64,000 bases of DNA from Pavona decussata (Eukaryota). The notes under the pieces are model-generated. The model worked only from the letters and a program-made list of their open reading frames with translations. It was not told the origin of the DNA and did not search any database. Made by a program: the position numbers and the translations under genes. This document shows, piece by piece, positions 584 through 54,441 of the stretch (positions are counted from its first letter, which is position 1; the number at the start of each line of letters is the position of its first letter). The stretch covers positions 248,001-312,000 of the forward strand of contig CDRNST010000127.1 of the NCBI GenBank assembly GCA_977016875.1, written 5' to 3'.

Positions 584-706
584 CTATACAATGGCGTTTA
601 TCGGATGCGAGTTGATAGCCTTCATCGCACGAACATTTATAACTGCCAATAGTGTTATGGCAAGTATGGGAGCAGCTGTGTAGCCCAAATAAACACTCGT
701 TCAGGT
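584..706 (-). CDS. Exon 22: calcium-binding EGF domain (gene continues outside window)
   Basis: [40 protein letters not shown]; donor GTTAGT; 123 nt. Confidence 0.88.
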
Positions 707-1987: not shown

Positions 1988-2018
<31 letters not shown>

Positions 2019-2133
2019 ACCACGCATTTTTTAGAGATAACTAAGCAACAAATATTCTAAAAAGCAGCAAAGTACAAAGCAATGTATGGCGCTTTTTTCC
2101 AAATTAAAGCTTTATTATCTCTGAAAAATGCAA

Positions 2134-2164
<31 letters not shown>

Positions 2165-2261: not shown

Positions 2262-2312
<51 letters not shown>

Positions 2313-5300
2313 AACCCAGGTTTAACAAAATGAAAATTGGTAACAGAAAGCTCAACCATTGGCTTTGACATAGAATTCAAGTAAACTTTAACTTATGCTT
2401 TCATTTGTGCTAAATTTGTAGTCAACAAAAATCCAAAAGCAGCTTTTATGAAGGAAACAATTTTAAACTGTGTTTACCTAAACAGCTTTTAAACGTGCTT
2501 AAGCCTTGGTGTGAATGGGGCATTAGACAGAGCGGGACTCGACCACCGGAACTCCGGATTCTTGCGTCCCTAATGTTATCTGTTTGTTGGATTTTTGTAA
2601 CAACCACAAATTAACGATCCAAAACAAACGTAAATTTTTTTTGCGGTGATTCCCTCGAAATAAAGATTGCCGTGAAATTTCTTGGCAAACTTTCTGCGCT
2701 GATGCGCAATGCTATTCAAAGGAATCACCTTAAGTGGTTTGGTTCATACCTTCACAACGTCTTCCATCTGACGCCAAAGTGTAACCATGGTGACACATAC
2801 AGCGGTGTCCTCCATCTGGGAGATTCACACAGTAGTGGTGGCAGCCATATCTCCTTGCAGGGCACCTCTCTTTTCCTTGAAAAAAGTTGGGAATTGAAAA
2901 GGCCCTTTGAGCTATCATTTAATTGCCGTTTCCGAAGTTCATAGAGGGACTCGATCGTTCAAGTTCCCTCATATGAAGAAATGAACCCCATCGCCAGAAA
3001 GATCACATAAAAATTAGCAAGTTTGCCAAGTTTGGTTACGTTTTATTGCGTAGTAACTAGGCTGTGACCTGTCAAAGGTCTCCCAAATTCCATACAGATG
3101 ACTCTAATTCTGAAATGGCGTCTCCCAAATCCATAGAGTCTCTAATTTTTTCCGATTTTTGAAAAGTCTTCTACGTGGTTGCAATCTAACGACAGAACCT
3201 CAAACTTGGAAAACTGACTAATTTTAATGTGGTCTATCTTGTGACGGACTTCAGTTTCTGATTGAATAAAAATTTAAATCTAGTCCACAGTCCCTTTATC
3301 AATTTTGCAACGGGCAATAAAGTTCCCAACCAGATAACAGTCTGGGGCCACCTTACATAAAGGCGATAATATAGTTCAGTAACTTTCTAAGCGTTTACAG
3401 ACGCTTAAATTCCCTAACGTTTTTAGTTCTTCTTTTACCTTTTTGTTTACATACAGTAGTGCATACTCTATATGAAAAACGTTTCACAACAATCAAGACC
3501 AAGTATCGCACACTATCTTGCATCTGCTTAGAAGAGCAAGGACATTTTCGAGCAATTACGTATTAAAACACGTAAAATGACATAAACAAGACTTTATTCT
3601 AGCAAGTAAGCCTAGCAAACGTTTATGAGGAACAACAAATGAATAAAATACATATAAAATACATTCTTTGGAATCCCCTTTCATATGAGTAAAGAGCCAC
3701 TCAACAAGAACACAAATATGTCTTTTTTAAACAAATAAATAAATAAATAAATAAATAAATAAATTAATTAATTAATTAATTAATCAATTCAAAACCTTAC
3801 CTTTGTGATGCTGATTGTAGTGTTTGTGCAACGTTTGTTTAAGGTGATGATAATGCCGCACATTGTTTGATTCCGCGTTTTCATCCGAATGACTTCCATG
3901 ATTTTTGTCGTCACTGGAAGGGCCTGAGGGAAACAAAATTGCATCGTTGGAACATTAACGCAATGCCTCAATTATCGGTTAAGATGAAATAAATGAAATA
4001 AAGAATTTAAAATACTGCTGAATCCACTGCTCTGAAATTAGTTGACGAAAATAAACTTTCCATTTGTGAAATTGTTTAAGCAATGTTTAAAAATGAGCAG
4101 GAGTGTTTTATCGGGTTTAAAACCACAAGGCGCAGACGAGTGGTTTTAGACCCGATAAAACACGTGCTGCAAGTTTTTTTGAACGGCTTCAAAAACATTC
4201 CTGGAAAAGCGTGTGTCAATAGAGTTTATAACAATTATGCTTTTGTGAATGTTGGAAATTAGCATATGAGAAAAACACCCCATAATAACGAGGAGTGTTT
4301 TATCAGCTGATAAAATACCGCATACTAATAAGGAGGAGGTTTATCGATATAAAGTCACTGCACGTGATGTATTATCGACCATTTGATAGGTCAATGGGCT
4401 TATGAATCATTAATGAGTTTTGAAAGTACTCAATTTCTACTCCTTATAACAGATAAGAATATAAAAGAATATATATATAGAATCATGGCCTAGTTTACTC
4501 ACCGTGTGTAGACGTCGTTGTTGGAGTCACTGTAGTTGATATCACTGGTTTGGTGGTTTCCAGTCTCTTTGTGGTCGGCTCGGTTGGTCGCTGAGAAACT
4601 GTAATGACAACGCAAATGAGAATATTTCTCTCTCGAAATCTTAAAGTTATCAGAAATATTCTGACATTAAGTTGCTCCCTTAGTACGCTTTCCATTTATT
4701 CATCTTAACGACTGTTTGTGTCATTAATAAGATGTGAAATCTCGCAGAGCTGGCTTTGTCAATCCTTCAGCATGGTGCATAAGATTTTCAAAGTAGAGAA
4801 AGCAAATTCAAAATGTTAACTGATAAAGCGGGGGCAAATGGAGGCAGAATAGCGAGAAACTCTTCAAATGCAGTGAATTAAGATGTAACTTTAAAAAAGC
4901 TAAGTTCTGAATTTTGAGATAATGCGCCATCAACGCCACACTCTATAAGACATGCGTGGAAACTGCTTACCATGTATAACGTCCTTGTTCTTCAATCTGA
5001 CAACATAAGCCATCGCAGTCGCAACAGAGAGGTGACTGGCCTCTATAAGCTGACACGTGTCCTTGTTGTAGCATCTCACTGTGTAACACCGCTGACCTTC
5101 ACTATAAGCCAGGTCACATGACTGATCCTCGCAACATAATTCTACGCACCGACTTATGTCTGGCACCAGACCCTTCTCCGTGAACACCCCTGAGTCTTGT
5201 CCCCCCTTCAACTGCACGTTGTAAAACGTTTTGTCTTTCTCACAGATAGTGCTGTGTTTGTAGTTCACGCTTTCATCTGGAGTAACTTCAGGCATTGCTA

Positions 5301-8300
5301 CTGGCTCAGCACTAACGTTTCCAAGCTTTTCCACGCTCGCTTCCGCGGCGCTACTAAACATAGCCAAACCACCTCTTTTGATGTAAGAAATCACCGCCTT
5401 TACCGCCGTGTTTTCAATTGGTCGCGTTCGACAGAGATCCCGACTGAAGCAGCTTACAGTATAACAGGTATCTTGTATGACATAAGCCACATGACATGTC
5501 GGAGATAAACAGCACTTCTCAATGCACAACTGAATATCGCCCACGTTTGGAAACTGAGCAACTTCGCCTGCTCCCATTCCTCCATTCAGTATGACCTTGT
5601 TGACTGTTAGTCCTTGGGAGCAGTCGGTTGGGGGCCTGGACGTAGCCATATGACTAGCATCCACGCGGGGGACCCCCAGCATATTACTAAGGGGTTGCGC
5701 AGTCGCAGGAGATTGTGTGGGTTTTACTTCACCAAGAAGGTCCTCCAGTGAAGGTTCTGTTGTTTTCGGAGCTTGCGTGGTCTTTGCTTGAGCTGTAAGG
5801 AGAAAACAAAAACATATTATTGAACGTTTGAATAATTCAACAATTGTTCTTAGGACACTTTGCTTCTATTAGACTCGAATGTTACTTCTCGTCGGTTACC
5901 TAATACTCAATCTTTCAGTAATTTTGGCTTAAATATTTTTGTTGAGTGCTTTCTTATTGTTATGCCACGTCTTCTTAACACAGCATTTCCGTTACAAAGA
6001 TAATTTGAAAATTTAACGAGCAAGGTGTTTATGTTTGAGCAGAGACATATTGTACAGTTTTGATCAAAGCAACGTAAACCCATGTGACATTGCCCATTTA
6101 AACAAATAGATCGACAAATAATCATATTTTACAATTGTTAAAACCAGTAACATAAAAAAAATATTTCTGTTAAGCATACCTTTGAACACTTTCCTGTACA
6201 TATATATCATCTTCAGAGAGAAATTCTTCAACCGGGCAGGCCTGACACTACAAAGCTCTGCAGCGGAGCATTCCAACGCAAAGCAAGTATCTCCCATAAG
6301 AATGGCCACATCGCATGTTCTCACATCACAGCATCTCCGCGCACAATCAGCCATATCTGTAAACTCTGCTAGCCGCGTAAAGTTTCCCGCACGAAGCCCG
6401 CCTACCAGAGTCACGTGATGATAAAGTTTGCTGTGGGTACAGGTTGATCTTGCAGGCTCTGACGTTGTGCTTGGAGGTGCTTTAGTAGTTAACAGCATGT
6501 TCATAAAGTTAAATGCCGTATCTTTGTCATCCTCCGTATAAAAAGCTTTAGCATCAGGGTCAATAAGGACTTGGCTTGCTGGGGCAGTCGATAAATTCTT
6601 GATTTCTTGGGCAAGATGAGGACGAGGTGTCGATTCTAAAAATGAAATACAAGTGGGGTGATCAGTGTTGCAGTTTTTTTTGTTTAGAACCTCAGTTTTA
6701 CTATCGTACTGGCGACTATTTGTTTATTTACCGAATTGATCAAAAGCAAGAAGAACGTCAATTATGTTTTAAGTCGTAATACTCTGATGTTGTCATTCAA
6801 AGTTTATTTTCTTTTAGCCTTGAATGGGAAAACACTGTTTGAAGATATTTCGAACCAACAAGAGAAAAAACAACTTTCACACGTTCCTCGTAATCAATAT
6901 AACCCTTTGTCTTCCTTAATACAAAAGACTACTTACCAGCTTGTTTGTGTCGATCAACAAAACCAATAACAGGACTGTTCTCGGACGGGTTCTTAATAAA
7001 CGTCTTGCATTCCTCCTTGTCGTTGCAACTAATGGCGAAGCAGTTATCCTCCACCATATATGCCACAGAACAATCCTTAATCCCACAGCAAATCTCCATA
7101 CACTCTTCAATAGCACCAACGGGTCCCTTATCAGTAAAATTTCCTGCGCCTAATCCACCTACGAGATCCCTGTTTCTGTACACGTTCCCCAGCTTACATA
7201 TGGAGTTAACGTTTGAGTTGGTTGTCTTGGCTACTGTGGGAGGCATAGCGGTGGTTTTAGTTGCCACACTTGTTGGCCGTTTGTTGGGCTTCGCCGTCGA
7301 TTGTGTAGTTGTTGCTGTTATTTCTGTGGCTTTAGTCGTTGTTGATGGTGTAGTTTGCGATTCCTTTGAGGTGTGCGGCAGAGGCCTAGCAGCACTGACC
7401 GCAGCCGTCGCTGTGCCAAGTCTAGCTTTCGTGGGTTCTCCTACCTGATCCATGAAATCTAAAGTGGTGTTGGGTGTCTTCAGAAGAGGCATGTTCGTTA
7501 AGTGAGTCTTAGCTTCCGAAAACCAAACGGAGTCGGTGTTTACTCCTGAAAATCTGTCCGAGGAAGGACCTTCCGTGTAACTCTTAGTGTAAACAGAATT
7601 TGAATCTGGTTGAAGATGAGTATTTCCACCCATGCTCTCCAGGTATCGATCGATCTCTCCCTCAGGCAGTGCGCGTCTGTACACGTAAATCTCATCAAGA
7701 TTTCCAAGCAAAATCCTGCGTCCTGAGTGTGAACCAAAACCTGCCTTAGCCCCCCAGTCAAGGGATAGCAAACCACTTCCATGCCCCTCCCCTACTAAGT
7801 CACCGTTGACAAACACTCTCGCCACGTGATTTCTTGAATCGTACGTGCCAACCACGTGATACCACACGTTGGGCTGTAGTATTGGCGAAGTCCTAACATT
7901 GAAGACCTCCTTGGCGTATTCGTTTCTATGAAACCATCTTATACGCCCATTGTAGACTTCAAAGTGGTACTGTCCTTTCCTGTGGATTGAGTGACCGCCA
8001 ATTGTGTCAAACAGGGAGTGCACTCCACCAGTCCTCCAGAGTTTTACCCACAATGCAATGGTAACTGCCTCCTGAGGTTTCTCTCTGAAGTGCTCACCGT
8101 CGAGAAGAACATCGCCACCATTGAGTTTAATAGCGGCACCTCGTTTGCCTGGTCTGGCTATTTCAGTACCTGGAACGAGACAATAAATATAAAGGTCAGC
8201 CGTAAGTTCTGTATGAAGGCCAGGACAAATCTTCCCTAAAGGAATTAGAAAAACAATTCGTTCCAAAGCGATCGGATTTACGAGCCTTTGTATCGTATCG

Positions 8301-8474
8301 TCGCACTCTATAATCTATGATTACTGCTAGTTTTAGAGATTATGTTTCTTATTTACCAGTATCCGAGTGCCACACGTTTGTCAATGACATTTGTCACTGG
8401 CACGTGTCAACCACAAGAAATAATGTCGCTATTCTATTCTATTCTATTCTATTCTATTCTATTCTATTCTATTC

Positions 8475-8519
<45 letters not shown>

Positions 8520-11500
8520 ATATTTCTTGCAAATAACTAGGTAATCCAGCCACATGGCTGCGGTGTTGTAATAAATCAAATATTCTATTCTATTCTATCA
8601 AATTTAAATAGCATATTTTGCAGGATATCCCTAAAAAACTACCGATACTCCTTCACAAACTTAGGTGGACAGTCAAATGTGGAATTCAAGACAACAACAA
8701 GTAAACTGTAACCGGTTTTAACTTTGGGCTACTTTTTCATTTTGAAAACGTCTAATGGGGAGTTGAATTTGGATATTTACCAAAAATCAGTTTTAAGAAG
8801 GACCATTCAAGAAATTTTAATAAAAGGCAGTGGTACAGATTAGGTGAGACAGGCTATTGTCGTTTTCACGATCTAATACGTATCGGTCTAATCCATTTTT
8901 TTTGGGCTTTCTTGTGTATACTTGTTGATAAAAACCATTTCTTAATCTTAATTACCTCTCGTTAATCTTGCATCGTTGTTTAGTCCAGATCCATCCACGG
9001 CCACAGAACCAATCACGTGATCAAATCCAAGGTAGAGCGAGAGATAACGGATGTGGTCCCCTGTCACATCATCCATGCTTCCACCCAGAGGACTAAGAGG
9101 GAGTGGGGTGGGGGTCGGAGAAGGTACATCCTCGTCCTCTACCATATCTGTAGTAAAAAAAATAAAATTATTATGAATATACTATATTTAATCCCGTTAA
9201 GTGTTTACAACACAAGCTGTTCGTGGGCCGAGCATTGGAACATTTGAAACAGATATTTCAGATTGAGTACGAGTTATTGAAAATTTATACAACTTTACGG
9301 GAAAATCTGAACAGATCTTTACATCGCCCACATAACGGAAGCGTTGTTCATGTTATATCACTGTAAGGGGACGCATGCGATGCTGGATTCTCAGCTATCT
9401 GCTAAAATTTAAACCATTTCTCAGCTCTCAGTTAATTATGCCTGGTCTCAGTTAACGTTTACTTCTCACGTAATTATTACGTTTTTTATCAGTTATCAGT
9501 GAATCCCATGCAGACCTTCTACTCTACATGCATAGCAAATACGTTTTAGGAGACTGCGATAGTTTCCTTGTATCCTTGTGCAAATTCTCAAACTAAGGTT
9601 TTACACTGTAATGTGCAATCAGTGGAGAAAACAGTATTATAGAAGTTTTTATTCGAATTCTATTCTATTCAAAGCCACTATAGTTTTAATTGTTAAGTGA
9701 AGAGCAATGTATCTCACCTTGACGACTAACAAAGGATATCTGATACTCTCCACCTTCCTCAACTGTACACGTATCTCCACCTTTGCATCGTACCGTATAA
9801 CATTTCTTTTTCTTTAGCATCACAAAATCACAAGCTGGTTCATCACAGCACAGATCAAGACACTCAGCCATATTATCCACGCCAGCCACTTGAAGCAGCA
9901 TGCCTGCATTCCAGCCGTCACGAAGCTTAACGTCATAGAAGAACATTCCTTGAGCACAGAAGCGCTTTGTGCTTGGTGAACTGTATGTGGGTCGGAAGGA
10001 ATCTTGCCTGTATGACAGGAACATGTCACTCGCTGTTAATCTGGTTGGTAGCAGTAGTGCAGTAGGTTTTTGGGTAGTTGGAGGGTTTGTTGGCCGCTCC
10101 TCCAAATCTTGCATCTCTGTGGAAATTATAGAATAGGAATGTATCATTTGTGTCATTAAAAAGGCACTCTTTGTCCAACGAAATAAATTTAGTGAGTTAT
10201 ATGAGATGACCATAAGTGCCGGCTCTTTAACCCGGATTCTGTAATATGAAACACGTAGAGGCGCTATTCATTCAAGAAAAATATTCGGTTGGAAATTCTG
10301 GAAACTTTCCGTGTCAAATTGAGAGGTTTTTTTCCAGCGTTTCAAACTTGCATTCTCGATGGCAGATGAGAAATTTGCGTAATGGCGCAATGATGGTGCG
10401 CGAAGACAACAAAGAGGAAATGGAAAAAGCCTGTACAAATAGAACGGTAATTTCCGTTCTGACTTGTTGGAGGTGTAACTGCACTAAAGTTTAGTCCTAA
10501 CAGGTGTTGTTGTGGATGATATTTTCAAGTCACAGCAGATGGTGTGAAAACATTCTCAGATATATGTCGGAGAACATTATGAAATGCTATCACGAGTAAA
10601 ACTCAAGAAAGTGGCTTTCGAGGATCAAGAAAAATAGACGGACCAGTGTAGATTGTTTAAGTTAATTAGGTTACCGTGTTTATCTTTGAAATATTTTCGA
10701 AGAAAGCGTGCGTACGACGTTGACTTCGTAACGTTTTGCGGCACAACTCTCGACATATATATTTACATCCTCGTCTTTTTCACAGCAAAACGCTCTTCCT
10801 TCATGAAATTTTCAAATAAAAATGACTCAAGTTTTGTAATAAGGGTATATCACTTCAAAAGGAGTGTCATCTCATTTATCCCAGATTTAGTTGGGGCAAA
10901 AGATCACGTGAAGCATTTTGACCAACCGGAAACAAAAGACAACATCTGATGGATGATAATTAATGACATTAGAACTGTGTCGTTTGAGGAACTACTTACT
11001 TCCGTCGAGGATAGACTTGCCGTTTCTTGTGACGTAGTAAACACTGGGCATGTCACCTCTGTACGGGACCGCTGCCACAGGCTCACATAGTTTATTGTTA
11101 AAGCAGTCCACAGCATAGCAGCTATCGCGAGTCATAAAAACAAGGTCACACGACTCGATTTCGCAACAAAGCTTCAAGCAACTTGTACTACCCTTTACTT
11201 GCCCCAGGTCTATGAAGAGTCCTGCGTTCATTCCACCTTTTAACTCACTGTTGAAGTAAAACATCCCTTGCTGGCAGTTTGGTTGTTCATGTAAGGTGAT
11301 CGTGGGTGGAACACCAGCTACCCCAAGCTTTTTGCTAAGGGTTGCAATAGGTGGTATATCAAGTGTTGGCTTAAATGAACTTGATACCACGGTGGGGCGC
11401 GTAGTGGGTATAGTAGTTGGTGTTTTTGTTGTAGCAATTGTGGATGGTTTTTTCGTTGGAGTAGGACGCGTTGTAGCTTTTGTCAAAGATTTCGTGGTGG

Positions 11501-44500: not shown

Positions 44501-47500
44501 GCACGATTACCTGACATCTTGTTTTATAGATTACGGCACCGAGCCGCTCAGTGACAAAATCATGATATAAATCAATATCAACAAGAAGATATAACTCAAT
44601 CTAAATAAAGGAAGTGATCAAAACTATTATACTCGAACAGGGCCTACCAAACCACAAATTAGATGGTGATCGATGGTGGCACCCCTCTTCATCAACCTCA
44701 AAAGATGGTGTCGTTCCTGCATAGCCACACCTCTATCCAGCAGCAAAACATGACAATGAGATTCAAACCTCACTTTACTTTTCTTGTTCATCTAGCAATT
44801 CTGACCCTTGCTAGCTGAATATTTCTGTGTCAACTCAAATTTTAAAGCCAATAAAACTTTGTCGGTAATGTTAATGAGATAGATGGTGTCTTCTATAACT
44901 CCCCTACTCCAGATAAGGTGGGCCCTCTTTTAACAAACTTGTGATGACCAGTTTCCTAAACATTCTTACCTTTTTGCCTGATGACGTGTGCTATTTTGGG
45001 TTTGAACTGAAGAGGCTTTACCGGTACCGTCCGGCAAAACTTTCCAACGCACGCCAAAGAATAGCAATTGCGCTCCAGCATCAGCGCCATTTTGCAGGAC
45101 AATTGCCTGCAGCATAAACGAAGACATTCAGTCATGTCCTTGACTTCTCCTTGATCGGTGAAGTTTCCCGCCTTTCGACCATACAGCAAGGAGTAATTGT
45201 AGAACACGTGGCTATACTGGCACGCGTGTGGTTTGACGTCAACGTGATGGCCTTCGGTGGTGGCTCTGGCCACGGTTTTCGCACCTAGCGACACAGAATT
45301 CAAAGCAGAGGCCACTTATTAAAAAATTTTGAATCAAAGTGTCAAACAAGTTATGTATCAGAGGTAGAGTTTTGAGATATGAAACAGGCAGCAAGGAATG
45401 TTCGTACTAAGTGCCGGAATCAGCCATATTTTCACATAGAATCACTGTAATGATCTGTTATACGTAAGGAATAACGCAAGTAAACTTGCAAAAGCAACAG
45501 GTAAGCCGTACTATCTGGAAATATGGTTTGCCGGCGAGGATTCGAACCTCGGTCTCCTGCATTCAAGACAGACGTGATAACCGCTACACTACAGGCGAAA
45601 CCACGGTAGAAGCGGGCGGAATAGCTTTAATAGCTTATTCTTATTCCATCACTAAGATCACGGGGTCGCTCACTCAACATGGAGAGTCTGATTTCACTTA
45701 GGATCGACTTACAGCGATCTGAATATTCAAATTAATACGTAACATGAAGCAGACAGAAGGAATCTTTGTACTTAGTGAATCAACCATATTTTCACATAGT
45801 ACGTTATACCTTGCTTTTACACCCTAACTTACTTTGCTCCTTTCATATAGATTTTTTTCAGATTTTTTTATTCATGCACTATTTCAAAAGTTTACTACAA
45901 AAGGAAATTACAATATATCACAAAAGTAACATACAGACAACATTAAATTACATTGATGTCAAAGGTAAAATGTGCGCAGTGACCAAAGGAGCTTAGGCTT
46001 TCGAGTTGGTCACTGCTACGTGCAGCTAACTGGCGTATAACGTGCAACTAACAGTAAAATATAACAATATAACAGGTCATTACAGTAGTCCTATGTGAAA
46101 ATACGACTGATTTACTAAGTATGAATATTCCTTGCTGTCTGTTTTATGTGAAATGCCAATGCGAGGTCCTTACACGCCTATCCCAAGTTTATAAATGGCA
46201 TGTCTCTTCAATAAAAATATGACGAAAATTCTTAGCGTCAAAGAAATTAGTACAAATATATCTTTAGCCTTCTATGACTACCAATATTACTCACGATCAC
46301 TAAGCAAAAGCTTATCCTTCTAGAGCGTTTACCTTGTTCATTAAGAGAAACACTCTGCATCTGTGCTACCCAAGTTGTGAAAGAAATTGTTGTTGAATTC
46401 GGCGAAGAAACACTCGGGGAGACACGACGAGTACTGGATTCACCAAGCTCGGCCAACATTGTCATTAATTCCTGGTGGCGAGAATTGACTTCATGTCGAT
46501 GAGAAGTGGTTATCGGGGGCGACGGTAAATAACTAACATGTCGCCCTGACTTGACGACGTCTTGGGAAGATAACAGTTGAGATAAACCTGAAAGTTCTGA
46601 CGTGTCATCTGTGCTGTGCGAGGAAAGCAAAGACGAAGAAGATGCCGCTTTTGAAGACTTGTTGAAGACTGTTGGAAGCTCTCTAGACGTTCCTGGAAAC
46701 TCCGGTAGAGATTTTCTGGATCCAGACGGATTTGTCGTAAACGAAGCCTTCGTTGCTCGGAACACATTTGTTCCATGGCTAACTGAACTCGATATAACAT
46801 TACTTTTCTTCGCCCCTGTGTAAAAACCAAATAACGAATCATTTGCTGGGTACAATTAACAATATGGCTTGGTGTCTCTTCGATACCTCCAGGTTCTATG
46901 CGTGTCGTGGGAGTATATGGTGTACAAGAAAAAATCCAAACTCTTAGCACAGTATTGCAAAAAATAAAATACAGCAAAATAGCCGTCATTTGTTCTTTCA
47001 AGTTCTTTTTTTTATTTCGCTATAATTTCACCTCGAATTCCACTCATCGGTCAACAATCGTTTGACCTACTTTCTCCGACCTTATTTATTTTATTTAGCT
47101 TTGTCATGCCAAACAAATTAGGAACAGAGACAGTGAAAAAATGGCTGAAGACGTACTGCAGCTCAGGTCACTTAAAGTGGCCCCCTCTGACTACGAAATA
47201 TAGAAATAAAATAGATTAAATCAACAAGATGGGGAAAGGAGGGGGGGGGGGGGGGAGGGCATTCCAGTCCACGGGCACATTTTTATTTCAAATAATAGAC
47301 TTCCAAGTCCGCACATAGTCCTGGTCGTATACAGTCTCAAGGGCATTACGTAATTATAAGAAAGTTCTCGCAGGTAGACAAGGAAACGAAGCTGTTAGGT
47401 AATAGATCTTAAGAGCATTCGAGATTGGGGATGATGTCACAAGGGGGGAGCGTTGAGAAGTAACAGTTTTCTGGGGAACAAACGTAGCCTCGTTGTTACT

Positions 47501-50500
47501 AGACTTGCCTCAAGTCGTTTTCTTATGAAAACGGACTTTGAGAAAGTCTACGTGATTACTCGAGGTTCTAGTAATTCTTCCTGAGTTTCGTCATAACTGG
47601 AAATTGGTCATTATCTATGTAAACCACACTGCTAATGGCCTTGAAAAAGGAGACAACATCAAGGAGTTATTTTGCCACTCTGAAGAGAACACAGGGCGCC
47701 CCTTCTGGGATACCAGTAAAGATTTAAGTGTTATTGTTTATGGTTATTTTGAATAAAGAAATATTCGATATGGCCGAACAAAAGCCCGGGTTAAGTAAAT
47801 ATTTAATACGAGTTTACAAAGGCAAAATTCCATTTATAGCCTTACTGCAGACAAAAAACAAATACATCTATGCAAAAGGATTAGAGAGAATTTCAACTCA
47901 TTCTATTAAACCTGGGATACACAAGAAATAAGTGTTTATTTACGAGGTATATCCCTTACGGAAGTCAGTAATGAGCGAAGCAAAATTTCAAAATATTTTT
48001 CTTAAATATTGCATATGAAATCACAAAGTAATTGGTTGAAAATGTGATATGCCTACAAGTGTAAAGATAACGATATTACAAAAAGTGTTCCATTTCAACA
48101 AGATGAAAAATAATGCGTAGCAACCAACCTTAAAATCCAAGATGTAATACCAATCTTCATTTTAGGTACTGTTTGAAGCGCTTTGGCATTGGTCCGATAT
48201 AAATTTAAACGGGTTTAGAAATTTCGAGAAAAAGCGGTGAAGCGACCAAAGTCGTTTCACCCGAAATTCAGGACACGTAGAGTTGTAACCTTAAATTCGT
48301 CTGAAGTACCGTATAACAGCCCTGAACTGAACCACATCATTGAGTCGTGCATTTTTAACACCAATTTTCGCGACGTTGCGTTAAGAAATATTTGAAAAAC
48401 TACCGGTGCCCCATTGATGATCGCTGACCGATGAAGTATAAGCAAACTAAACAGACAATGAACACCAGCGGTGATTTACGACATAGACCAATGAACGATT
48501 GACAGGATTTCAAAATAGTTTCCTTAGAACATGTTACCGGCAAGCTCTCTAATTGCCCCAAATCTCAAGATATCAATTCTCCTGCTACGTGTCCATATGT
48601 TAGTTTTACCATTTGCTCGGAGAATTTGGTAGTTTATCAGAACAATATCCGCTATATGGACTCTATCCGTGTTGAAAACAATGAGGGAATTTCTTTTCTT
48701 TTCTTTTTTAGCTGGAAGAATTCTTTTGACCACTTTAGGTGTTTATTTTGTTTATTTTCAAAGCAATTTTGTTAAGGTAAAGAAAATCGTGAAGCTCTGT
48801 GTTTAAAATAAACGAAAATATTTAGAGGAGTATTTTTTTCAACCCTGACATATCCGCACGTATGCCTTGGGGGATCATGTGTTTCCTAAGGCTACATTAC
48901 ATGAAATAGGGTCACTAACTCAATCGAATTAATCATTTAAACTTTAAACTGAAAGGATTAACCGACACTGAAAGGGAAAATCGCCGAAAAAAAAATTCGG
49001 TTCTTTGCTTTTCTCACGAGAATAACAAGGCTGAACTTTAAACTTTGAAATACAATCAGCAACCCTTCATTGCATAAAAGTCAAGTATTGGGGCGTGTAA
49101 TATCTAATTCTCATTTTCTAAACTCTGTTGAAGAAACCCCCTAGCGTGGCTATTCAAATATAAGCTATTGAGACGCAGTCAGCTTCTTGATATGTATCCG
49201 ATTCTTAAGTTTTCCCACGAAGTTTTTTTAAAGAAAAAAAGTTGGTATTGTGGTGCTCTTACAAGTAGAAACAGTAACAGCCTACCTTTCTCAAATTGAC
49301 CTCTTTTCCTCAAGAAGGCCACCTGCACAATGTCTGAACTAACATCACCGGCTTTCATTTGCCCAGGTTCACACATCTCACTATTGTCACACGTGATCAC
49401 AAAGCAATGCAAACTGCGCATGTACGCGACGTCGCCACCCACGTCACAACTCAGGTGAATACAAGTGCGCATGTCCGGAACAGGTCCCAGCCCGACGGCT
49501 GTGCCGCTTGGAGGAGAAACATCGTGAGATATTTGACTTTCTTGGCAATATTTCACGTCGTCTATTTGTTCTACGGTTTCTCTCGAGTCTGTGGTTTGAT
49601 TAGTGTCTACAGATTGATTAAAATCACTAAAGGGGAGTGTTTCCGTTCTTAAATGAGACATCGAAGAACTGATCTGTTCACCGCGCGATTTTTTGGACTT
49701 TACATTTCTGGGGTTGACTTGTGTTGAAGGCACCACCTTAACTGTCGAGTTCAAAATCGCATTTGTAAATGTTTTTGACCTGTCTCCCAATAACAAAAAG
49801 TTGCTGTTATGGAGAGAAACGTTTCTTTTCAAAGTGTTCTGAGTGCTTGGCAAGACATTTGAAGTTACAGCACGCGTACCAAGTTCCGAATGCCTGGGAC
49901 TCGTGTAAAGTTGGACTCTCAGTGTCACTTTTGGGATTAATAGAGTTGAAGAATGTTTGAGCGCATGTGTTACTTCTGAAGATCGCGCGACTGATTGTGT
50001 TGCTAAGCTCCAGTGTTTTAGTGAAGAGCGTGACTTAACTGGAGTTATCTTGTCTACCGCACCCTTCAAACGAAGGGGTGACGGGGCCGAAGTTGTTTCA
50101 AGGCGCCTCCCCTTCTGAGGATTGCGTGACACAGCTAAGGAAGGCTTCTGTTTAAACGCTTTGTTGGAATTTGCTGAAATAGCTACGGTAGTCTTTTGTG
50201 CAACACTCTCAAGGGAATAGGGTGTGGGTGCTGGTGTCGGTTTACTCCTTTCGCTTTTCAGAAGGTTCAGTGACACTGTTGGTACCGTCTTTTCAGTCTT
50301 TGAAGCATTGCGTGACGCTGCGTGTGCGGTTATTCTCTTGCCAGGCTTGTGAGGTTTGATTGCTCTTGCATCTGCTTCGGCTTTGAGAATGAAGTCTGAA
50401 GGGTGATGTGCCTTTTGCGAAGGAGCTGTACAACAATACAATTAAGAAAAGTCAGACGCCTGAAACTATCATCTAGTTGACACTAAAATTTAATTGATTC

Positions 50501-53500
50501 ACATTAAATAAGTAAAGCAACAGGTGTGTGTCTTTTGAATCTTACTCGATCTGAAAAATCAATTCCCCTAATCAGAAATCATCTCCTGGTATAATGAAAG
50601 GCCATTCACTGCACAAAATTTAGCACCAACATCCACAAGTTACAAAGTAGTCAAACATGCAACTGGCAAATCAGAAATTTCCACTGTCAATTTTAGCTCG
50701 TTCCTCAAATTCTAGAGTCTTTTTTTTGTCTTAAGTGTCCATTTTTAACCACAAGCCTCTTGTAATTTTTTCGGTAGTGAAACTGTACTCGGAAACATGC
50801 ACCGGACATGCACATGCACATCTAAATTCCGGTTTCCATTTTCCTCCGGAGAACTTGTATAAGAAAGTTAATGTAACAAAAGTCATTCAAAAAGAGTTTT
50901 AAACCACTTACCACTATTCGCAATTCTGTGGACGCTTGTGGCGTAAGAAAGCTGAAGAACGAACTTGCTGTCTTTCGCCGGTATCCATTGGCACTGCGTC
51001 TGGTTGTTACAGTGAACAGAAAAGCACCGTTTTCCCGCCATAAACGCCGCGTCACACTTGTGCGATCGACAGCACAACCTTTGACACACGGACATAGTGC
51101 CCAGGTCCCCATGATCCACGAATGTTCCGGACTGGTAACCATTAGCAAGAGTGGCGTTGAATACAATGGCGCTGTGTTGACACTTGTTAACACGGGGTCG
51201 AGGCCATACATGATCTGGGAGAGAGAGCAAAAATGAACGCACAAGCTGAATAGCAACTTTTTTTTGGTCTTTCTATTAAGGTTAGTAATATCAAAAACTC
51301 GTAGCTAGTATTCTCCTTCATACGAAAGACGCTAACTGCTATATTTCGCTCAGCGGTTGAAAATAAACCGGAACAAAACAAATACTATCTCTTGCTTCTC
51401 ATTTTCTCTATTGAGAAATTAGTCAAAAAAGAGCCGCTTCTAGCATCGGAAAGGATATATTTTTCGCCTTTATTTCAAGGCTAACAAAAATATAAAGGGG
51501 AAGTATCATGGAGTTTTTGGTATCTTTTGTTAAAAATGATGAAATAAGACCTTCAATCAGCTGCCAAACAATTCTAGAATGACGACAGGAAAGAAGTCAA
51601 CTCAATTCTTGAAAGGAATCTGTTTGTGATCTTTGCTAGTGAAATTTGGAAGCGAAAATGCGAGAACTTGAAAAACATTAGCCTAGCATTTGTCAAGTTT
51701 CAATCCATACCGGCCTACTCTGTCTCTGGCCAGAGGCACTAATCGACGGTTTTATTGAACTGGGGTGATAATTTATAACAAACTTGACAATTATTTCGTT
51801 GTTTCTGCTGACAGACAAACATTTTTCGGTTTTTGAAATGACAGTAAATTGCCGTGATACTTCCCCTTTAAACACCAATCAAGAAAAAGAAAAGTTCTTG
51901 CCTGCGCACAGAAATTAAGTAAAGGGATTTTTTTCCGTACCCTACAAAATAAAATGACCCATAACTTGTCTAGGCGCCAATCTCGCTCTTTTTTTTTTTT
52001 TTTTCATACTTTTTGTATTTCTGTTCAGCTTCAATAAACCAGTGTTAGTGTACTTAGATATATCGAAACTATTTCGTATTTTTTCCGACAGCTTAAAAAA
52101 GTAATATAGTGGTGTTTACTAAAATGCAGTATTTATAAAATGGCGTGCATTTGAGGGGGATGGGGCGGGTTCAACTACGAAAATCAGTATACCATTACTT
52201 GACACCAGAGCTTGTAGCCTTCTAACTCTTTCAAAGTGAGAGTAACTTAAGGTAAAAACGACTTCTCAGCCTGAGCATTTTTCGCAAGACTGACAGTTCA
52301 CGCTACAAGCCGCTTCACTGGAGCAATTGAAACAATTGTCAAGCCAACCGCAGCTATATCAATATTAACAAATTTTCACCGAATTCCAAATAAATATCTG
52401 TAAACATTCACTGAAGCGTACTCAAGGTTATTGCTATTGACCCACGGGGGAAGGTGATCATGGCAAAGCAAAGTCAACTGAAACGACGCGTAACTGATTC
52501 CGCACGCTGAAAATTTTTCTTCGCACTGATGAACTGCCCTTGAGCTTCGCGCAAAAAAATTCTACATTAGAATTAGTAATTTTACGCTTATTTGTGAAAA
52601 GCTAAAACACTGATATTTTTTGTGTTGGGAAATCAAAAACGTCTAGTATTATTTTAAGGACAATTTATCGAAATTCATTCATTTTTTATCCAGTGAAGAT
52701 GTCTATAATTTCGGTTACAAATATGTGACAAGATGGTATATACTTCCAGATCGTCGTTGCGCGGAACTGACGCACATTAAAAACAGCGAACTCGGATCCG
52801 CCTACGATACATTGCTTAACTCGAGATAGCACTACCTTTTGAAGGTGTGAATAAAATCCTCTAGCGTGGGTACTTAACTGTGGTACTGTTTATCATGCTC
52901 TAACTTTTACGTCTGTAGCTGAAATCATAGTACAGTATGTGACCATTCAAATGAAAGCTACTGAGCAGTACTTTCCTGTGGTGCTGTTTATTATGCTGTA
53001 CAAGGTGGTTCTAATTTTTGAGTCTGTAAATGAAATCCTAAAGTGTGACCATTCAAATGAAAGCTACTGAGCAGTACTTTCCTGTGGTGCTGTTTATTAT
53101 GCTGTACAAGGTGGTTCTAAGTTTTGAGTCTGTGGATCAAATCCTAAAGTATGACCATTCAAATGAAAGCTACTGAGCAGTACTTTTCTGCGGTGCTGCT
53201 TACTATGCTGTAAAAGGTAGTTTTAATTTTTGAGTGTGTGTATGGAATCCTAATGTCTGACCATTCAAATGAAAGCTACTGAGCAGTACTGTTCTGTGGT
53301 GCTGTTTATTATGCTGCCTTTGTGACTTTAACGTTTGAGGCCGATGCAAAAATCCTCGAGTGTGTGGCGATTCAAATGAAAGCCGTTGACCCTTATTCCT
53401 GTGTGGTACAGTTAGTTTTTTCTTTTCAATATTTTCAAAGACGGTTGCAAATTTTGGATCTCTTTCCCGTTTCCACCTCAAGTGCTTCTAAAAGCAAAAG

Positions 53501-54441
53501 GGTTATAATGTCCGGAGTCCAGGGCTGCTCCACTTTATGAAGCTTTCATGATCATACATTTAGAAGGAAAGTAGCCGCAACAAATCAATTCTTGTCTTAA
53601 ACGGAATTGTATGTCAAACGTTCTTATTTTTTTCTTTTTGCGGCGCTTGTTTCATTCCACTTCGGTTAGATCATAAGTGCCTCCGGGACCGCGTCATTCT
53701 TCTTTCAAACAAGAAAACGAAATCTTTTCCACAAATGGCGGCGAAGACATCGACAACAATAAAACTTTTCGAAATCCAAGAGCAACCTACCTTGTATTAA
53801 TTAAACACCGGCTGCCATATTACAGACCTACTTGTCTTTGACCGTTAGAATACAGATAAGACCTGTTTAGCTTGCGCCACCGTGCATTACGAAGCTCGGT
53901 AGTAAAGAAATCATAGATCTAAAGATCAAATCAGTTCCTACCTTGCTGAGTACCTTTTCTTGCAGCTAATAAGTTTGTTTCACCTTCGTAACGCGAGCGC
54001 AAACTGATGCTTCGAGATTTTCGATACAAACATGACCGATTACCACAAGAGGCGCCAAAGCAATTTCCTTGTGATACAACAGAATGCTTACACCATGTTA
54101 GACCACAACAGCGCGATAAACAGCCATGGAGAGTTGTAAATGAGCTAAGAAAACGCCGGGATCCATGTCTGAGTTTTCCATGTTCATAGATCCCAGAGAT
54201 AAATGCGTAAGTTATGTTTTTGCCATCCCCCTCGCAGGTGTGTGTCGATCCCGAGTAGTCAAAACTTGCGAAGGTACCTGCAGGATGAAAAGTGCTTTTA
54301 GGAAAGCATAAAAACTAACAATCACACGCTTTTCTCCTTGTCAAAAGGTACAAAATACATACCAGCGAAGAGAAGAAGTCCTAGAGTAAGAAATGTCAAG
54401 GTTATGTTGTCTTTTATGGTTGGAATGTGAACCGTATGCAT
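584..54441 (-). CDS. Giant multi-exon gene (22 exons in window, 3' end beyond position 1): secreted/surface protein with ~33 MANSC/MANEC-like (PAN/apple-fold) 8-Cys modules, mucin-like linkers, 2 LamG/ConA-like domains, >=3 EGF domains; >11,500 aa
   Basis: Hand-spliced from GT/AG boundaries. All introns are phase 1 and all internal exons are multiples of 3. The motif C-x8/9-(V/S)TLxGGxxAGxFxxxGxVxxxxxCxxxCCxxxxCDxAFxxxxxCYxxxCxxxxxC recurs across many exons. That all exons join into one transcript is inferred. Confidence 0.8.
1091..1265. mobile_element. Short MITE, TIR related to 58315-58688
   Basis: ATAAACCATATTCCAAAACGGC / GCCATTTTGGAATAAGGTTTAT. Confidence 0.65.
1313..1435 (-). CDS. Exon 21: calcium-binding EGF domain
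   Basis: [40 protein letters not shown]; 123 nt; below the ORF-track cutoff. Confidence 0.88.
1491..1651. mobile_element. Short palindromic MITE
   Basis: ATAGGCCATTTC...TGAACCTCATTAT / ATAATGAGGTTCA...GAAATGGCCTAT. Confidence 0.8.
1884..2521. mobile_element. Outer MITE hosting the 1914-2306 insertion
   Basis: TIR GCCCCATCCACACCA / TGGTGTGAATGGGGC. Confidence 0.65.
1914..2306. mobile_element. TTAA-flanked MITE (Kolobok-like) nested in another MITE
   Basis: TIR GGACGGTGCCTACTA / TAGTAGGCACCGTCC; TTAA at 1910-1913 and 2307-2310. Confidence 0.85.
2750..2875 (-). CDS. Exon 20: EGF-like domain
   Basis: [37 protein letters not shown]; 126 nt with splice sites. Confidence 0.88.
3733..3785. repeat. 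(AAAT)n/(AATT)n microsatellite
   Basis: Seen directly. Confidence 0.9.
3801..3923 (-). CDS. Exon 19: His-rich spacer ([40 protein letters not shown])
   Basis: Acceptor TTTCCCTCAG, donor GTAAGG; 123 nt; frame differs from the ORF-track call. Confidence 0.72.
4083..4416 (+). repeat. Dispersed repeat with hairpin head, copy 2
   Basis: Colinear with 183-480; hairpin GTGTTTTATCGGGTTTAAAACCAC...GTGGTTTTAGACCCGATAAAACAC. Confidence 0.85.
4503..4598 (-). CDS. Exon 18: Thr/Pro-rich spacer ([31 protein letters not shown])
   Basis: Acceptor TCATTACAG, donor GTGAGT; 96 nt. Confidence 0.75.
4971..5792 (-). CDS. Exon 17: two MANEC-like modules
   Basis: ORF 4930-5682 extended to acceptor TTCTCCTTACAG; donor GTAAGC; 822 nt. 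Confidence 0.85.
6180..6635 (-). CDS. Exon 16: one MANEC-like module
   Basis: ORF 6064-6504 extended to acceptor TTCATTTTTAG; donor GTATGC; 456 nt. Confidence 0.85.
6937..8169 (-). CDS. Exon 15: rest of LamG-like domain 2, Thr-rich stalk, one MANEC-like module
   Basis: [28 protein letters not shown]; 1233 nt with splice sites. Confidence 0.87.
8429..8518. repeat. (ATTCT)n + (TAT)n microsatellite
   Basis: Seen directly. Confidence 0.95.
8956..9147 (-). CDS. Exon 14: N-terminal part of LamG-like domain 2
   Basis: LSLYLGFD...DGSGLNNDA parallels exon 11; 192 nt with splice sites. Confidence 0.82.
9718..10116 (-). CDS. Exon 13: one MANEC-like module
   Basis: ORF 9686-10213; acceptor TTTCCACAG, donor GTGAGA; 399 nt. 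Confidence 0.85.
11000..11647 (-). CDS. Exon 12: Thr/Pro-rich stalk plus one MANEC-like module
   Basis: ORF 10992-11693; acceptor TTGTTTATAG, donor GTAAGT; 648 nt. Confidence 0.85.
11699..12224. mobile_element. TTAA-flanked MITE (Kolobok/piggyBac-type target site)
   Basis: TIR GGGAACCTCCACT / AGTGGAGGTTTCCT, TTAA on both sides, internal palindrome 11938-12092. Confidence 0.75.
12492..13118 (-). CDS. Exon 11: LamG-like (concanavalin A-like/pentraxin-type) domain 1
   Basis: Motifs [37 protein letters not shown]; 627 nt with splice sites. Confidence 0.85.
14114..14291. mobile_element. Palindromic MITE
   Basis: Near-whole-length hairpin: GTGCGTT...GGATTTGTGATCTC...GGTGCATCA.AGGAAC.GACGAATC / reverse complement. 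Confidence 0.8.
14673..14767 (-). repeat. Degenerate tRNA-derived SINE head
   Basis: Box A/B-like remnants on the minus strand (CAGCAGTTAGAG...GTTCGATTTC); recognised by pattern only. Confidence 0.4.
14768..15138. mobile_element. Degenerate second copy of the TTAA-type MITE at 1914-2306
   Basis: Colinear similarity (GGGAAA.GCAGATCT, GGCTATTG.AATCC.AAAAGAAAA, TATCTCTGAAAAATG, CAGAACGTAT). Confidence 0.7.
15508..15669. repeat. Palindromic mini-element with central GCCCC-TTC-GGGGC hairpin
   Basis: Arms TCTTATTAGATGGTTTTACATATAATA / TATTATATGTAAAACCATCGAATAAGA. Confidence 0.75.
15681..16502 (-). CDS. Exon 10: low-complexity/helical linker
   Basis: ORF 15664-16497; acceptor TTCTGTCTTAG, donor GTAGGA; 822 nt. 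Confidence 0.78.
17111..36478 (-). CDS. Exon 9 (19,368 nt; 6,456 codons): 16 MANEC-like modules, mucin-like, coiled-coil, basic/His-rich and tandem-repeat segments
   Basis: Uninterrupted ORF 17085-36539; acceptor ...GTTGCTTGCAG|TAG (NAGNAG), donor G|GTATGT. Confidence 0.88.
18340..18915 (-). repeat. Coding tandem repeat, 183 nt (61 aa) x ~3
   Basis: CTCACTGCTCGAGCTAACCC at 18381, 18564 and 18747. Confidence 0.92.
36997..38208 (-). CDS. Exon 8: Ser/Thr-rich mucin-like linker
   Basis: ORF 36959-38221; NAGNAG acceptor (TAG|CAG|), donor GTAAGC; 1212 nt. Confidence 0.8.
38801..44284 (-). CDS. Exon 7 (5,484 nt): seven MANEC-like modules with acidic/Ser-rich linkers
   Basis: ORF 38787-44279; acceptor CCTTCTGCAG, donor GTAAGG. 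Confidence 0.88.
44970..45314 (-). CDS. Exon 6: one MANEC-like module
   Basis: ORF 44956-45315; acceptor TTTTAATAAG, donor GTAAGA; 345 nt. Confidence 0.8.
45381..46145. mobile_element. Inverted-repeat-bounded element containing the tRNA-like gene
   Basis: ~80-bp imperfect inverted repeats at 45381-45462 and 46068-46145; third (direct) copy at ~45747-45799. Confidence 0.6.
45527..45598 (-). tRNA. tRNA-like gene/pseudogene (72 nt, type I body, TGA at anticodon position)
   Basis: A-box TAGTGTAGCGG; D stem GTG/CAC; anticodon arm TCTGT-CTTGAAT-GCAGG; T arm CGAGG-TTCGAAT-CCTCG; acceptor stem only 5/7 paired. Confidence 0.6.
46333..46815 (-). CDS. Exon 5: Ser-rich linker
   Basis: ORF 46247-46855; acceptor TTTTTACACAG, donor GTAAAC; 483 nt. 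Confidence 0.7.
49286..50425 (-). CDS. Exon 4: S/T/K-rich linker plus 6-Cys variant module
   Basis: ORF 49179-50441; acceptor TTGTACAG, donor GTAGGC; 1140 nt. Confidence 0.8.
50912..51214 (-). CDS. Exon 3: one MANEC-like module
   Basis: ORF 50883-51242; acceptor CTCTCTCCCAG, donor GTAAGT; 303 nt. Confidence 0.85.
52860..53410. repeat. ~106-bp tandem repeat, ~5 copies
   Basis: GACCATTCAAATGAAAGCTACTGAGCAGTAC recurs at 52941, 53047, 53153 and 53259, with degenerate flanking copies. Confidence 0.9.
53942..54277 (-). CDS. Exon 2: divergent MANEC-like module (TCEGDG...[32 protein letters not shown])
   Basis: Acceptor CCTGCAG|G, donor G|GTAGG, 336 nt open, 8-Cys spacing retained. Not in the ORF track. 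Confidence 0.8.
54363..54441 (-). CDS. Exon 1: start codon and signal peptide ([27 protein letters not shown])
   Basis: First in-frame ATG after an upstream TAA, hydrophobic core, donor G|GTATGT, phase 1. Not in the ORF track. Confidence 0.7.

Follow-up and report, generated by a model that had tools for sequence, protein, structure and literature searches.

The DNA examined here, a 64,000-nt stretch of the Pavona decussata genome (the window), in all likelihood holds most of a single minus-strand gene of ~60.6 kb. Its 28 exons comprise ~35.3 kb of coding sequence and would encode a giant surface glycoprotein of ~11,774 aa, anchored in the membrane with type I topology. Sequence comparison identifies the gene as the scleractinian orthologue of the Nematostella gene NVE19315, also known as 2030T and LOC5501396. 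Pre-miR-2030 lies in intron 10, and its mature miRNA would, by analogy with Nematostella, cut its own host transcript.

Splice mapping placed 22 exons on the minus strand of the window. All introns between them are GT-AG and in phase 1, and none of the exons contains a stop, which agrees with a prior interpretation of the same DNA (the sequence-only reading) that had joined a signal peptide to 22 compatible exons. The in-window coding sequence sums to 34,477 nt (~11,492 aa), or ~11,503 aa when exon 18 begins at an alternative acceptor, 4631. The gene had been described as open at the window edge, and extension to the left carried it ~6 kb further, adding six exons: an Ig exon (-916 to -1194), three EGF_CA exons, a transmembrane (TM) exon (-5230 to -5393) and a last exon (-6121 to -6156). 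Across the whole gene 26/27 introns are GT-AG and in phase 1, every internal exon starts and ends in phase 1, and there is one signal-peptide exon and one TM exon. No terminal-exon feature or in-frame stop was found between exons 1 and 28. These features predict that all 28 exons are joined in one transcript.

All exons, including those beyond the left edge, are on the minus strand. Exon 1 (54363-54441) begins with the ATG at 54441, encodes a hydrophobic leader and ends at a GTATGT donor; another coral (L006) has a colinear counterpart at 73% identity. Exon 2 (53942-54277), located by Pfam, profile search and splice mapping, encodes MANEC module 1, which is divergent and has 8 Cys. Module 2 is in exon 3 (50912-51214). 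Exon 4 (49286-50395) contains a linker and the degenerate module 3 and is conserved in coral L006, and exon 5 (46333-46815), colinear in the same coral, is an S/T-rich linker without Cys. Exon 6 (44970-45284), found by Pfam, profile search and a Pocillopora gene model, encodes module 4. Exon 7 (38801-44284; 5,484 nt) encodes modules 5-11 and has orthologous ORFs of 1,500-1,900 aa in many corals. Exon 8 (36997-38205) is another linker without Cys. The giant exon 9 (17111-36478; 19,368 nt, ~6,455 aa) encodes modules 12-27 with three linkers of 1,011-1,415 aa, and is followed by a linker exon, exon 10 (15681-16502). Exon 11 (12492-13118) encodes the first Laminin_G_3 domain, supported by Pfam and orthologue alignment. 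Modules 28 and 29 are in exons 12 (11000-11647) and 13 (9718-10116), and exon 14 (8956-9147) is a short conserved spacer without a Pfam match. Exon 15 (6937-8169) combines the second Laminin_G_3 domain with module 30; exon 16 (6180-6635) encodes module 31 and apparently forms one ORF with exon 15 in a distant species (L008). Modules 32 and 33 share exon 17 (4971-5792). Exons 18 (4503-4598) and 19 (3801-3923) encode T-rich and His-rich spacers, respectively. Neither is covered by an orthologue alignment, and exon 18 is for that reason the least certain exon. The last three in-window exons encode an EGF domain (exon 20, 2750-2875) and two Ca-binding EGF domains (exon 21, 1313-1435; exon 22, 584-706).

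The domain content was examined with Pfam and with an iterated profile search of all six frames. The profile search returned 33 MANEC/KIAA0319_N modules, all on the minus strand and in the order 27, LamG, 2, LamG, 4, exactly the count and arrangement first proposed. From the N-terminus the complete order is signal peptide, 27 MANEC modules, LamG, two MANEC, LamG, four MANEC, a Thr/His-rich spacer, three EGF, an I-set Ig, three Ca-binding EGF, a TM helix and a tail of ~30 aa. In every large open frame KIAA0319_N (PF23597) and MANEC (PF07502) scored far above the curated cut-offs, with 129-210 bits for KIAA0319_N in the large exons (cut-off 27) and 46-86 bits for MANEC (cut-off 25.5). Pfam also identified two Laminin_G_3 domains (within 12388-13143 and 6932-8314) and three in-window EGF/EGF_CA domains (2733-2918, 1173-1466 and 582-776), all of which had been anticipated. 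Each module is ~85 aa long. The modules had been described as 8-Cys units, and an alignment of all 33 does contain 8 conserved Cys columns, of which 4 are invariant and 3 conserved at ≥90%; a few modules are degenerate, that of exon 4 having 6 Cys. The 33 copies are spread along ~11,000 residues rather than present as a single N-terminal copy. The single N-terminal copy is a naming convention of MANEC, not a structural requirement.

An AlphaFold model of a single module (pLDDT 91) was compared with known structures using Foldseek. The top matches were 2MSX, the MANEC domain of HAI-1, and 5H7V (probability 1.0, TM 0.58), followed by PAN/apple domains of plasminogen, HGF and factor XI. A profile search of the module also matched 2MSX (E = 6e-4). 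The proposed MANEC/PAN fold is thus borne out by Pfam, the model and the best structural match. Structural similarity beyond the MANEC domain is weak (TM 0.4-0.56, E > 0.05).

The linkers contain no Cys, which is confined to the modules. They had been called mucin-like and S/T/P-rich, a description that holds in moderation: S+T+P make up 21-32% of the long linkers, there is no VNTR array, and the last linker is K/E-rich. The only coding tandem repeat detected by TRF is 183 nt x3.1 (61 aa x3). The protein has 185 N-X-S/T sequons, and the S/T-rich linkers, which reach 1,400 aa, are probably disordered and glycosylated. Heavy mucin-type glycosylation is not assured, because S+T+P reach just 21-32% and tandem repeat arrays are lacking.

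The region left of the window supplies the I-set Ig, three Ca-binding EGF domains, the TM helix and the short tail, which ends in KKSLFSWxE. The protein had been regarded as secreted. Given the TM exon and the conserved cytoplasmic tail it is not simply so, and a type I membrane protein is predicted instead. The TM helix, a basic stop-transfer sequence and KKSLFSWxE are kept from corals to Nematostella, and their conservation argues for a retained cytoplasmic function. It is quite improbable, in our view, that the product serves mainly as secreted gel or ECM material (mucus, larval glue or the organic matrix of the skeleton) and has an anchor that is transient or skipped by alternative splicing. 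The ectodomain is huge, with glycosylatable linkers and many sequons, the phase 1 symmetry of internal exons would allow TM-proximal exons to be skipped in frame, and membrane mucins are commonly shed. Against this stand the conserved anchor and tail, and Pfam found no SEA, GPS, vWD-type cleavage or polymerization, or NIDO-AMOP-vWD domains; the juxtamembrane position is filled by EGF, Ig and EGF. There is also no obvious inter-chain disulfide domain, since Cys is restricted to the modules. A skeletal-matrix role, one of the functions first suggested, is unlikely to be ancestral because the orthologue is present in a non-calcifying anemone. We favor a membrane-anchored product and infer that it forms an extended apical-surface (glycocalyx-type) scaffold, displaying numerous binding modules of PAN type that would serve in adhesion or recognition.

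Orthologues support the order of the exons. In coral L006 exons 1-9 are colinear, and exons 8 and 9 are one uninterrupted ORF. The Oculina, Montipora and Nematostella RefSeq models are colinear with the gene from exon 9 through the TM exon. The Nematostella protein LOC5501396 (P0033; 6,953 aa) aligns in 20 colinear segments that begin in exon 9 and reach the last EGF exon; the TM region and KKSLFSWxE match too. LOC5501396 was taken to be the miR-2030 target gene from its published equation with NVE19315 (PMC8141815); NVE19315 is also named 2030T (Praher et al. 2021, PMC7935066). Conservation to Nematostella covers the number and order of modules and their Cys pattern, as well as the tail and the LamG, EGF, Ig and TM domains.

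Public models are all fragments, and 0 reach from exon 1 to the TM exon. The three RefSeq models begin at a Met inside exon 9 and lack a signal peptide, the Pocillopora model (P0206) is partial, and the Oculina GenBank annotation lists two separate loci, ACROYT_G032462 and G032464. The sequence-only reading had expected automated annotation to split the gene in this way. The annotations match a reading in which the locus is two or more adjacent genes, with exons 1-8 encoding a secreted N-terminal poly-MANEC protein and a separate membrane protein starting in or just before the giant exon, and the RefSeq starts in exon 9 could be genuine internal starts and not a sign of truncated predictions. 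We nevertheless consider separate genes unlikely. A signal peptide is missing from the models that begin in exon 9, though all of their domains are extracellular. Independent models bridge the supposed boundary, with those of Oculina and Desmophyllum (P0056 and P0041) joining exons 7, 8 and 9 and that of Pocillopora connecting exons 3, 6, 7 and 9. The single ORF formed by exons 8 and 9 in the other coral, the phase 1 junctions and the lack of a stop or terminal-exon feature likewise argue for one gene, as does the placement of the miR-2030 target sites.

The miR-2030 hairpin lies in intron 10 at 13850-13932, oriented like the gene, with the mature 5p arm at 13891-13912. The mature sequence is an exact 22/22 match to published spi/nve-miR-2030. 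The hairpin has an MFE of -47.7 kcal/mol (z = -6.6) and is conserved in the same intron in three other corals. miR-2030 is one of only two microRNAs reported to be conserved across Cnidaria. Neither the intronic hairpin nor its two exonic target sites had been seen in the sequence-only reading.

Target site 1 (22491-22512) is in exon 9, inside MANEC module 24. As at site 2, the miRNA sequence matches the plus strand and the minus-strand mRNA is complementary to it. Here 21/22 positions pair, the one exception being an A·C mismatch at position 5 of the miRNA. The site encodes I-S-Y-N-V-T-L, and a single copy of the peptide SPISYNVTL is present in each of 35/35 giant-exon orthologues, Nematostella included. 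Target site 2 (44211-44232) lies in exon 7, close to its 5' end. Pairing is perfect at positions 6-20, and there are 3 mismatches. It encodes A-V-S-Y-N-V-T-L-H and lies in a 23-nt block that is invariant in 5 species while the flanks diverge. Both sites encode S-Y-N-V-T-L and both are conserved across corals. In the 602-Mb genome they are the two best antisense matches to miR-2030 and the sole near-perfect sites; four other matches within three mismatches are at chance level, as a reversed-pattern control gave three. The two targets flank the boundary that separate genes would require, one on each side.

In Nematostella the miR-2030 precursor is in an intron of NVE19315, the host transcript is sliced at two sites, and the gene and miRNA are co-expressed at the oral end (Moran et al. 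2014, PMC3975064). If the coral gene behaves likewise, its transcription would also release pre-miR-2030 from intron 10, and the mature miRNA would pair almost perfectly with the coding sites in exons 7 and 9 of its own host mRNA. Slicing, demonstrated only in Nematostella (PMC3975064), would then be expected in corals as well. The resulting incoherent feed-forward loop may cap or buffer the output of the 35-kb mRNA.

The linkers are far less conserved than miR-2030 and its sites, and the giant-exon ORF varies from 5,630 to 10,958 aa between species. It might be argued from this that the miRNA is the chief conserved functional product and the coding region a largely dispensable carrier transcript, specific to its lineage and fast-evolving; we regard this as very improbable. 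Uninterrupted ORFs of 5,600-11,000 aa are retained in dozens of species, and the domains and tail are conserved to Nematostella. The only strong targets of miR-2030 lie in the host's own coding sequence, an arrangement that would be hard to understand unless the level of host mRNA matters. We thus prefer the reading in which the giant protein is itself a conserved product.

In the searchable literature no characterized protein with the same architecture was found, in line with the original expectation. KIAA0319, KIAA0319L (AAVR), LRP11, HAI-1/SPINT1 and MANSC1 are type I membrane proteins with the same module family, 8-Cys pattern and PAN/apple-like fold. In these vertebrate proteins a lone N-terminal module precedes PKD, Kunitz or LDLa domains, whereas the coral protein has 33 modules with LamG, EGF and Ig instead and is 10-20 times longer. 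No Kunitz or LDLa match was found in it. A KIAA0319/AAVR-type receptor was rejected, as PKD must follow MANEC in such a protein and no exon had a PKD match at E ≤ 0.01 in Pfam.

Tandem PAN/apple modules in Toxoplasma MIC4, Eimeria PAN proteins, factor XI/prekallikrein, plasminogen and HGF bind protein or carbohydrate. They share the fold class (for plasminogen and HGF, in the N-domains), and some were among the structural matches. These proteins differ in having just 4-11 modules with another Cys pattern, and they lack long linkers and a LamG/EGF/Ig/TM region. Many tandem MANEC modules are also present in Hydra LOC100203833 and Dendronephthya LOC114528113, the former aligning to the LamG-MANEC exon, but these proteins are much shorter (1,700-2,300 aa). 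The same coral genome contains at least 49 further MANEC modules, clustered at other loci and mostly in small open frames (~100-430 aa); a genome-wide search found no near-perfect miR-2030 site at these paralogous loci. With these and the Hydra and Dendronephthya proteins, the presence of many MANEC modules in one protein is not peculiar to the gene in the window.

MUC16/CA125, like MUC4, MUC12, MUC13 and MUC17, is a giant type I glycoprotein with a huge Ser/Thr-rich exon, juxtamembrane EGF and a short tail. The coral protein resembles these membrane-tethered mucins, MUC16 especially, in its size and topology, one enormous Ser/Thr-rich exon, dozens of small globular ectodomain modules and EGF adjoining the membrane, and it has the signal peptide, single TM helix and short cytoplasmic tail of this class. 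Its modules are MANEC/PAN whereas those of MUC16 are SEA, the autoproteolysis domain not found in the coral protein. Mucin PTS domains are usually >40% Pro/Thr/Ser in tandem repeats, in contrast to the coral linkers with their lower content and single 61-aa x3 repeat.

The gene is not new to the literature, its Nematostella orthologue having been reported as host and target of miR-2030. The Nematostella RefSeq model lacks the signal peptide and N-terminal exons, no description of the domain architecture of NVE19315 was found in papers that call it 'unknown' or 'uncharacterized', and what is known of slicing and expression comes from Nematostella. The two orthologues share an intronic miR-2030 and two nearly perfect complementary sites in the transcript. 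What is new is the recognition of the coral gene as the orthologue of this Nematostella host and target, published as an "unknown protein".

The product of the poly-MANEC gene is most probably a single type I membrane protein, ~11,800 residues long, whose ectodomain is modular. The DNA of the window is AT-rich and eukaryotic (GC ~41%), and scleractinian corals are the nearest named relatives of its proteins. All poly-MANEC features lie on the minus strand, where open frames of 6,485 aa (36542-17088) and 1,843 aa (44318-38790) are accompanied by a dozen smaller ones. Exons were mapped by scoring donor/acceptor pairs between successive open frames, and the junctions were checked against orthologous protein alignments. 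A hydrophobic leader begins with the ATG at 54441 and runs up to a GTATGT donor. 22 exons fall within the window, of which exon 9 (36478-17111, minus strand) is the giant exon; the internal exons are all symmetric in phase 1 and contain no stop codons.

The sequence-only reading proposed extending the locus leftward to find the C-terminus. C127:238001-248000, the adjoining 10 kb of the contig, was added, and orthologous RefSeq proteins located six further minus-strand exons left of the window. The first encodes an I-set Ig domain, the next three EGF_CA domains, the fifth a TM helix and a basic stop-transfer sequence, and the small last one GEKKSLFSWTE and a stop codon. The TM exon is found at 4472-4801 of L003, the locus holding the left extension (window positions -5230 to -5393), and the last exon at ~3845-3880 of L003 (window positions -6121 to -6156). 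The protein had been described as secreted; the TM exon and the conserved tail correct that description to a membrane-anchored protein that is not simply secreted. The end of the cytoplasmic tail, KKSLFSW-x-E, is kept in Oculina, Montipora and Nematostella. To our knowledge it matches no recognised sorting or PDZ-binding motif. Summed over single exons, the coding length is 35,325 nt or 11,774 aa, with 34,477 nt (~11,492 aa) inside the window; all searches were run exon by exon.

The Pfam search placed KIAA0319_N and MANEC far over the cut-offs in all these minus-strand frames; two exons of the window matched Laminin_G_3 and three matched EGF/EGF_CA. An iterated profile search of all six-frame ORFs of the window identified 33 MANEC modules, all on the minus strand and in the order 27, LamG, 2, LamG, 4, in agreement with the count and order read earlier from the sequence. 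Across the aligned modules Cys is shared at eight columns and the motif N-V-T-L-R-G-G recurs; module-to-module identity is only ~30%. The linkers between modules contain no Cys. In the protein as a whole Ser plus Thr account for ~20% of residues, in the long linkers for 16-26%, and there are 185 N-glycosylation sequons.

A structure model of a single module, built from the module alignment, reached a pLDDT of 91. Its best structural matches were the MANEC domain of HAI-1 (2MSX, 5H7V), followed by plasminogen, HGF, factor XI and other PAN/apple domains. 2MSX was also matched by the module profile at the sequence level. The MANEC/PAN assignment of the sequence-only reading is thus upheld by Pfam, by the structure model and by the matches to 2MSX.

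Several other features were recorded in and around the gene. The sole coding tandem repeat, 183 nt (61 aa) x3.1 with 93% matches, is at 18355-18917 in exon 9; it sits in the K/E-rich last linker and suggests a recent local expansion. A non-coding tandem repeat, 106 nt x3.6 with 91% matches, occupies 52938-53316 in intron 2. Intron 5 holds a tRNA-Ser(TGA)-like sequence at 45524-45598 on the minus strand (Rfam, 51.9 bits; also identified by ARAGORN); it may represent a genuine tRNA gene or the start of a SINE derived from a tRNA. The intron after exon 22 contains a ~300-bp interspersed repeat (~175-478) with at least 40 genome copies of 86-91% identity on many contigs. Some of its matches are inverted over ~100 bp, and it resembles a SINE or MITE. 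Upstream of the gene, the minus strand carries a DIRS-like retroelement at 59394-63731. In one of its frames an RVT_1 reverse transcriptase precedes a weak match to a Dam-like or PCIF1-like methyltransferase, and the next frame encodes a tyrosine recombinase (Phage_integrase); overlapping long ORFs had no Pfam match. Pfam also gave no match for plus-strand ORFs within the giant exon (at 24856-25317 and at 33568-34266) or for small ORFs lying 5' of exon 1, and these were taken as chance.

Whether the 28 exons belong to one gene or to several was judged from indirect lines of evidence, which agree and are consistent with one gene. A single signal-peptide exon and a single TM exon bracket domains that are all extracellular, and 26/27 introns have phase 1. 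From within exon 9 as far as the TM exon, the gene is colinear with RefSeq models of Oculina patagonica, Montipora foliosa, M. capricornis and Nematostella vectensis. Exons 7, 8 and 9 are joined in an Oculina GenBank model and a Desmophyllum model, and exons 3, 6, 7 and 9 in a Pocillopora damicornis model. In L006, a locus from another coral assembly, exons 1-9 are all present in unchanged order and orientation, including the signal-peptide exon, and exons 8 and 9 form a single uninterrupted ORF of 6,937 aa. In one more distant species the ORF orthologous to exon 15 holds a second MANEC module, consistent with fusion to exon 16. Exon 7 is also tied to exon 9 by miR-2030, since each exon carries a site for this miRNA. 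Automated annotation was expected to fragment the gene, and it does: no public model is complete, and the models that start in exon 9 lack a signal peptide.

miR-2030 is one of two miRNAs earlier reported as conserved across all Cnidaria (Praher et al. 2021, PMC7935066). The window was searched with the mature sequence printed in PMC3962355, which generated three matches where none is expected by chance. One of them, at 13891-13912 on the minus strand within intron 10, is in sense orientation and exact. It lies in a hairpin of textbook shape with an MFE of -47.7 kcal/mol (z = -6.6). Rfam at gathering thresholds reported only the tRNA, and not the mir-2030 family, in the window plus the 10-kb extension. 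In three other coral assemblies the hairpin occurs in the same intron, directly upstream of the first LamG exon; the duplex is kept, with compensatory changes in the lower stem and the loop-proximal pairs.

The other two matches are antisense and lie in coding sequence of the host. The exon 9 site (22491-22512, one mismatch) encodes I-S-Y-N-V-T-L within module 24, and the exon 7 site (44211-44232, three mismatches) encodes A-V-S-Y-N-V-T-L-H. Positions 6-20 of the miRNA are perfectly paired in both duplexes. Across the 602-Mb genome seven matches with three or fewer mismatches were found, of which the miRNA itself and the two host sites are the best three. The other four have internal mismatches, and a reversed-pattern control gave three matches. 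This shows that the two host sites are the only strong targets of miR-2030 in the 602-Mb genome.

Conservation of the exon 7 site was compared at the nucleotide level and that of the exon 9 site at the peptide level. At the exon 7 site, a block of 23 nt is invariant in five species, one of which has diverged flanks. For exon 9, each of 35 giant-exon orthologues, Nematostella's included, has the site peptide SPISYNVTL exactly once. The arrangement of host, miRNA and targets is kept in reef corals.

The poly-MANEC gene is the orthologue of Nematostella 2030T (NVE19315, LOC5501396), so named and listed as an uncharacterized protein by Praher et al. 2021 (PMC7935066). In Nematostella, two sites in the host transcript are almost fully complementary to miR-2030, and both are sliced (Moran et al. 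2014, PMC3975064). The literature searched for MANEC/MANSC in cnidarians yielded only the single-module nematocyst protein NSP5, and the main text of the Nematostella matrisome paper does not mention a MANEC protein. The sequence-only reading was right that the architecture is real, and it is new to the literature searched; the gene was already known as host and target of miR-2030, without a protein identity. The novelty is the architecture and its connection with the miRNA circuit. The product of the self-targeting host, "unknown" or "uncharacterized" in published papers, is now identified as what is most probably a single membrane-anchored protein of ~11,800 residues with 33 PAN/MANEC modules. 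Known MANEC architectures, which had one module per protein, now extend to dozens, and studies of expression, proteomes and knock-outs in Nematostella and corals gain a corrected gene model.

In dozens of coral assemblies the giant exon has an orthologous ORF, 5,630-7,666 aa long. In L012 (ENA ERZ25071792, ctg18748), a locus from another coral assembly, the giant-exon ORF from locus position 7341 is 10,958 aa, versus 6,485 aa here, and in some species the protein may exceed 15,000 aa. At least 49 further MANEC modules are clustered at other loci of the Pavona decussata genome. Among these loci, C131:305771-402561 has ~26 modules and C303:107491-133956 has ~12, in both cases mostly in small open frames and nearly all on one strand. 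Both hold paralogous poly-MANEC genes and lack miR-2030 sites. Since all named homologues are cnidarian and further clustered modules occur in the genome, poly-MANEC proteins are a cnidarian gene family, of which the miR-2030 host gene is the largest member.

By analogy with Nematostella, miR-2030 would be co-transcribed with its host and would slice the host mRNA. Such a circuit would act as an incoherent feed-forward loop, restricting or buffering the output of host mRNA. Both target sites are written in the conserved S-Y-N-V-T-L motif of the module, which suggests that the miRNA arose from module coding sequence. Inverted duplication of the target exon was considered as the source of the miRNA; in local alignments of the hairpin region with both target regions, similarity was confined to the duplex. 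Corals and sea anemones diverged more than 500 million years ago, according to a preprint. Our joint reading, held tentatively and at somewhat less than even confidence, is that miR-2030 exists essentially to autoregulate a single giant gene, possibly having originated in its module coding sequence, and that host, intronic miRNA and two coding sites form one unit kept since the coral/sea anemone divergence. The protein would represent a cnidarian-specific class of membrane-anchored poly-PAN surface scaffolds, and its dosage would need close buffering in one particular cell type at the oral end. Why a giant surface protein needs built-in miRNA buffering becomes a testable question.

Judged by anatomy alone, the protein may be an extended, glycosylated surface scaffold on which many PAN-type binding modules and a pair of ConA-like LamG domains would be displayed. 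The conserved tail would anchor it and probably bind a cytoplasmic partner. An ancestral role in the skeletal organic matrix is disfavoured because Nematostella has an orthologue. A KIAA0319/AAVR-like receptor was rejected, as PKD domains are absent. The mucin-like scaffold proposed earlier holds only in part, and membership of the canonical mucin family was rejected: there is no VNTR, PTS content is moderate and a SEA domain is missing. The poly-MANEC protein resembles MUC16-type membrane mucins in architecture alone: a giant exon, numerous small modules, EGF domains next to the membrane and a short tail are common to both. In the three features just named, which define mucins, it differs from them, its only coding tandem repeat being the 61-aa x3 one.
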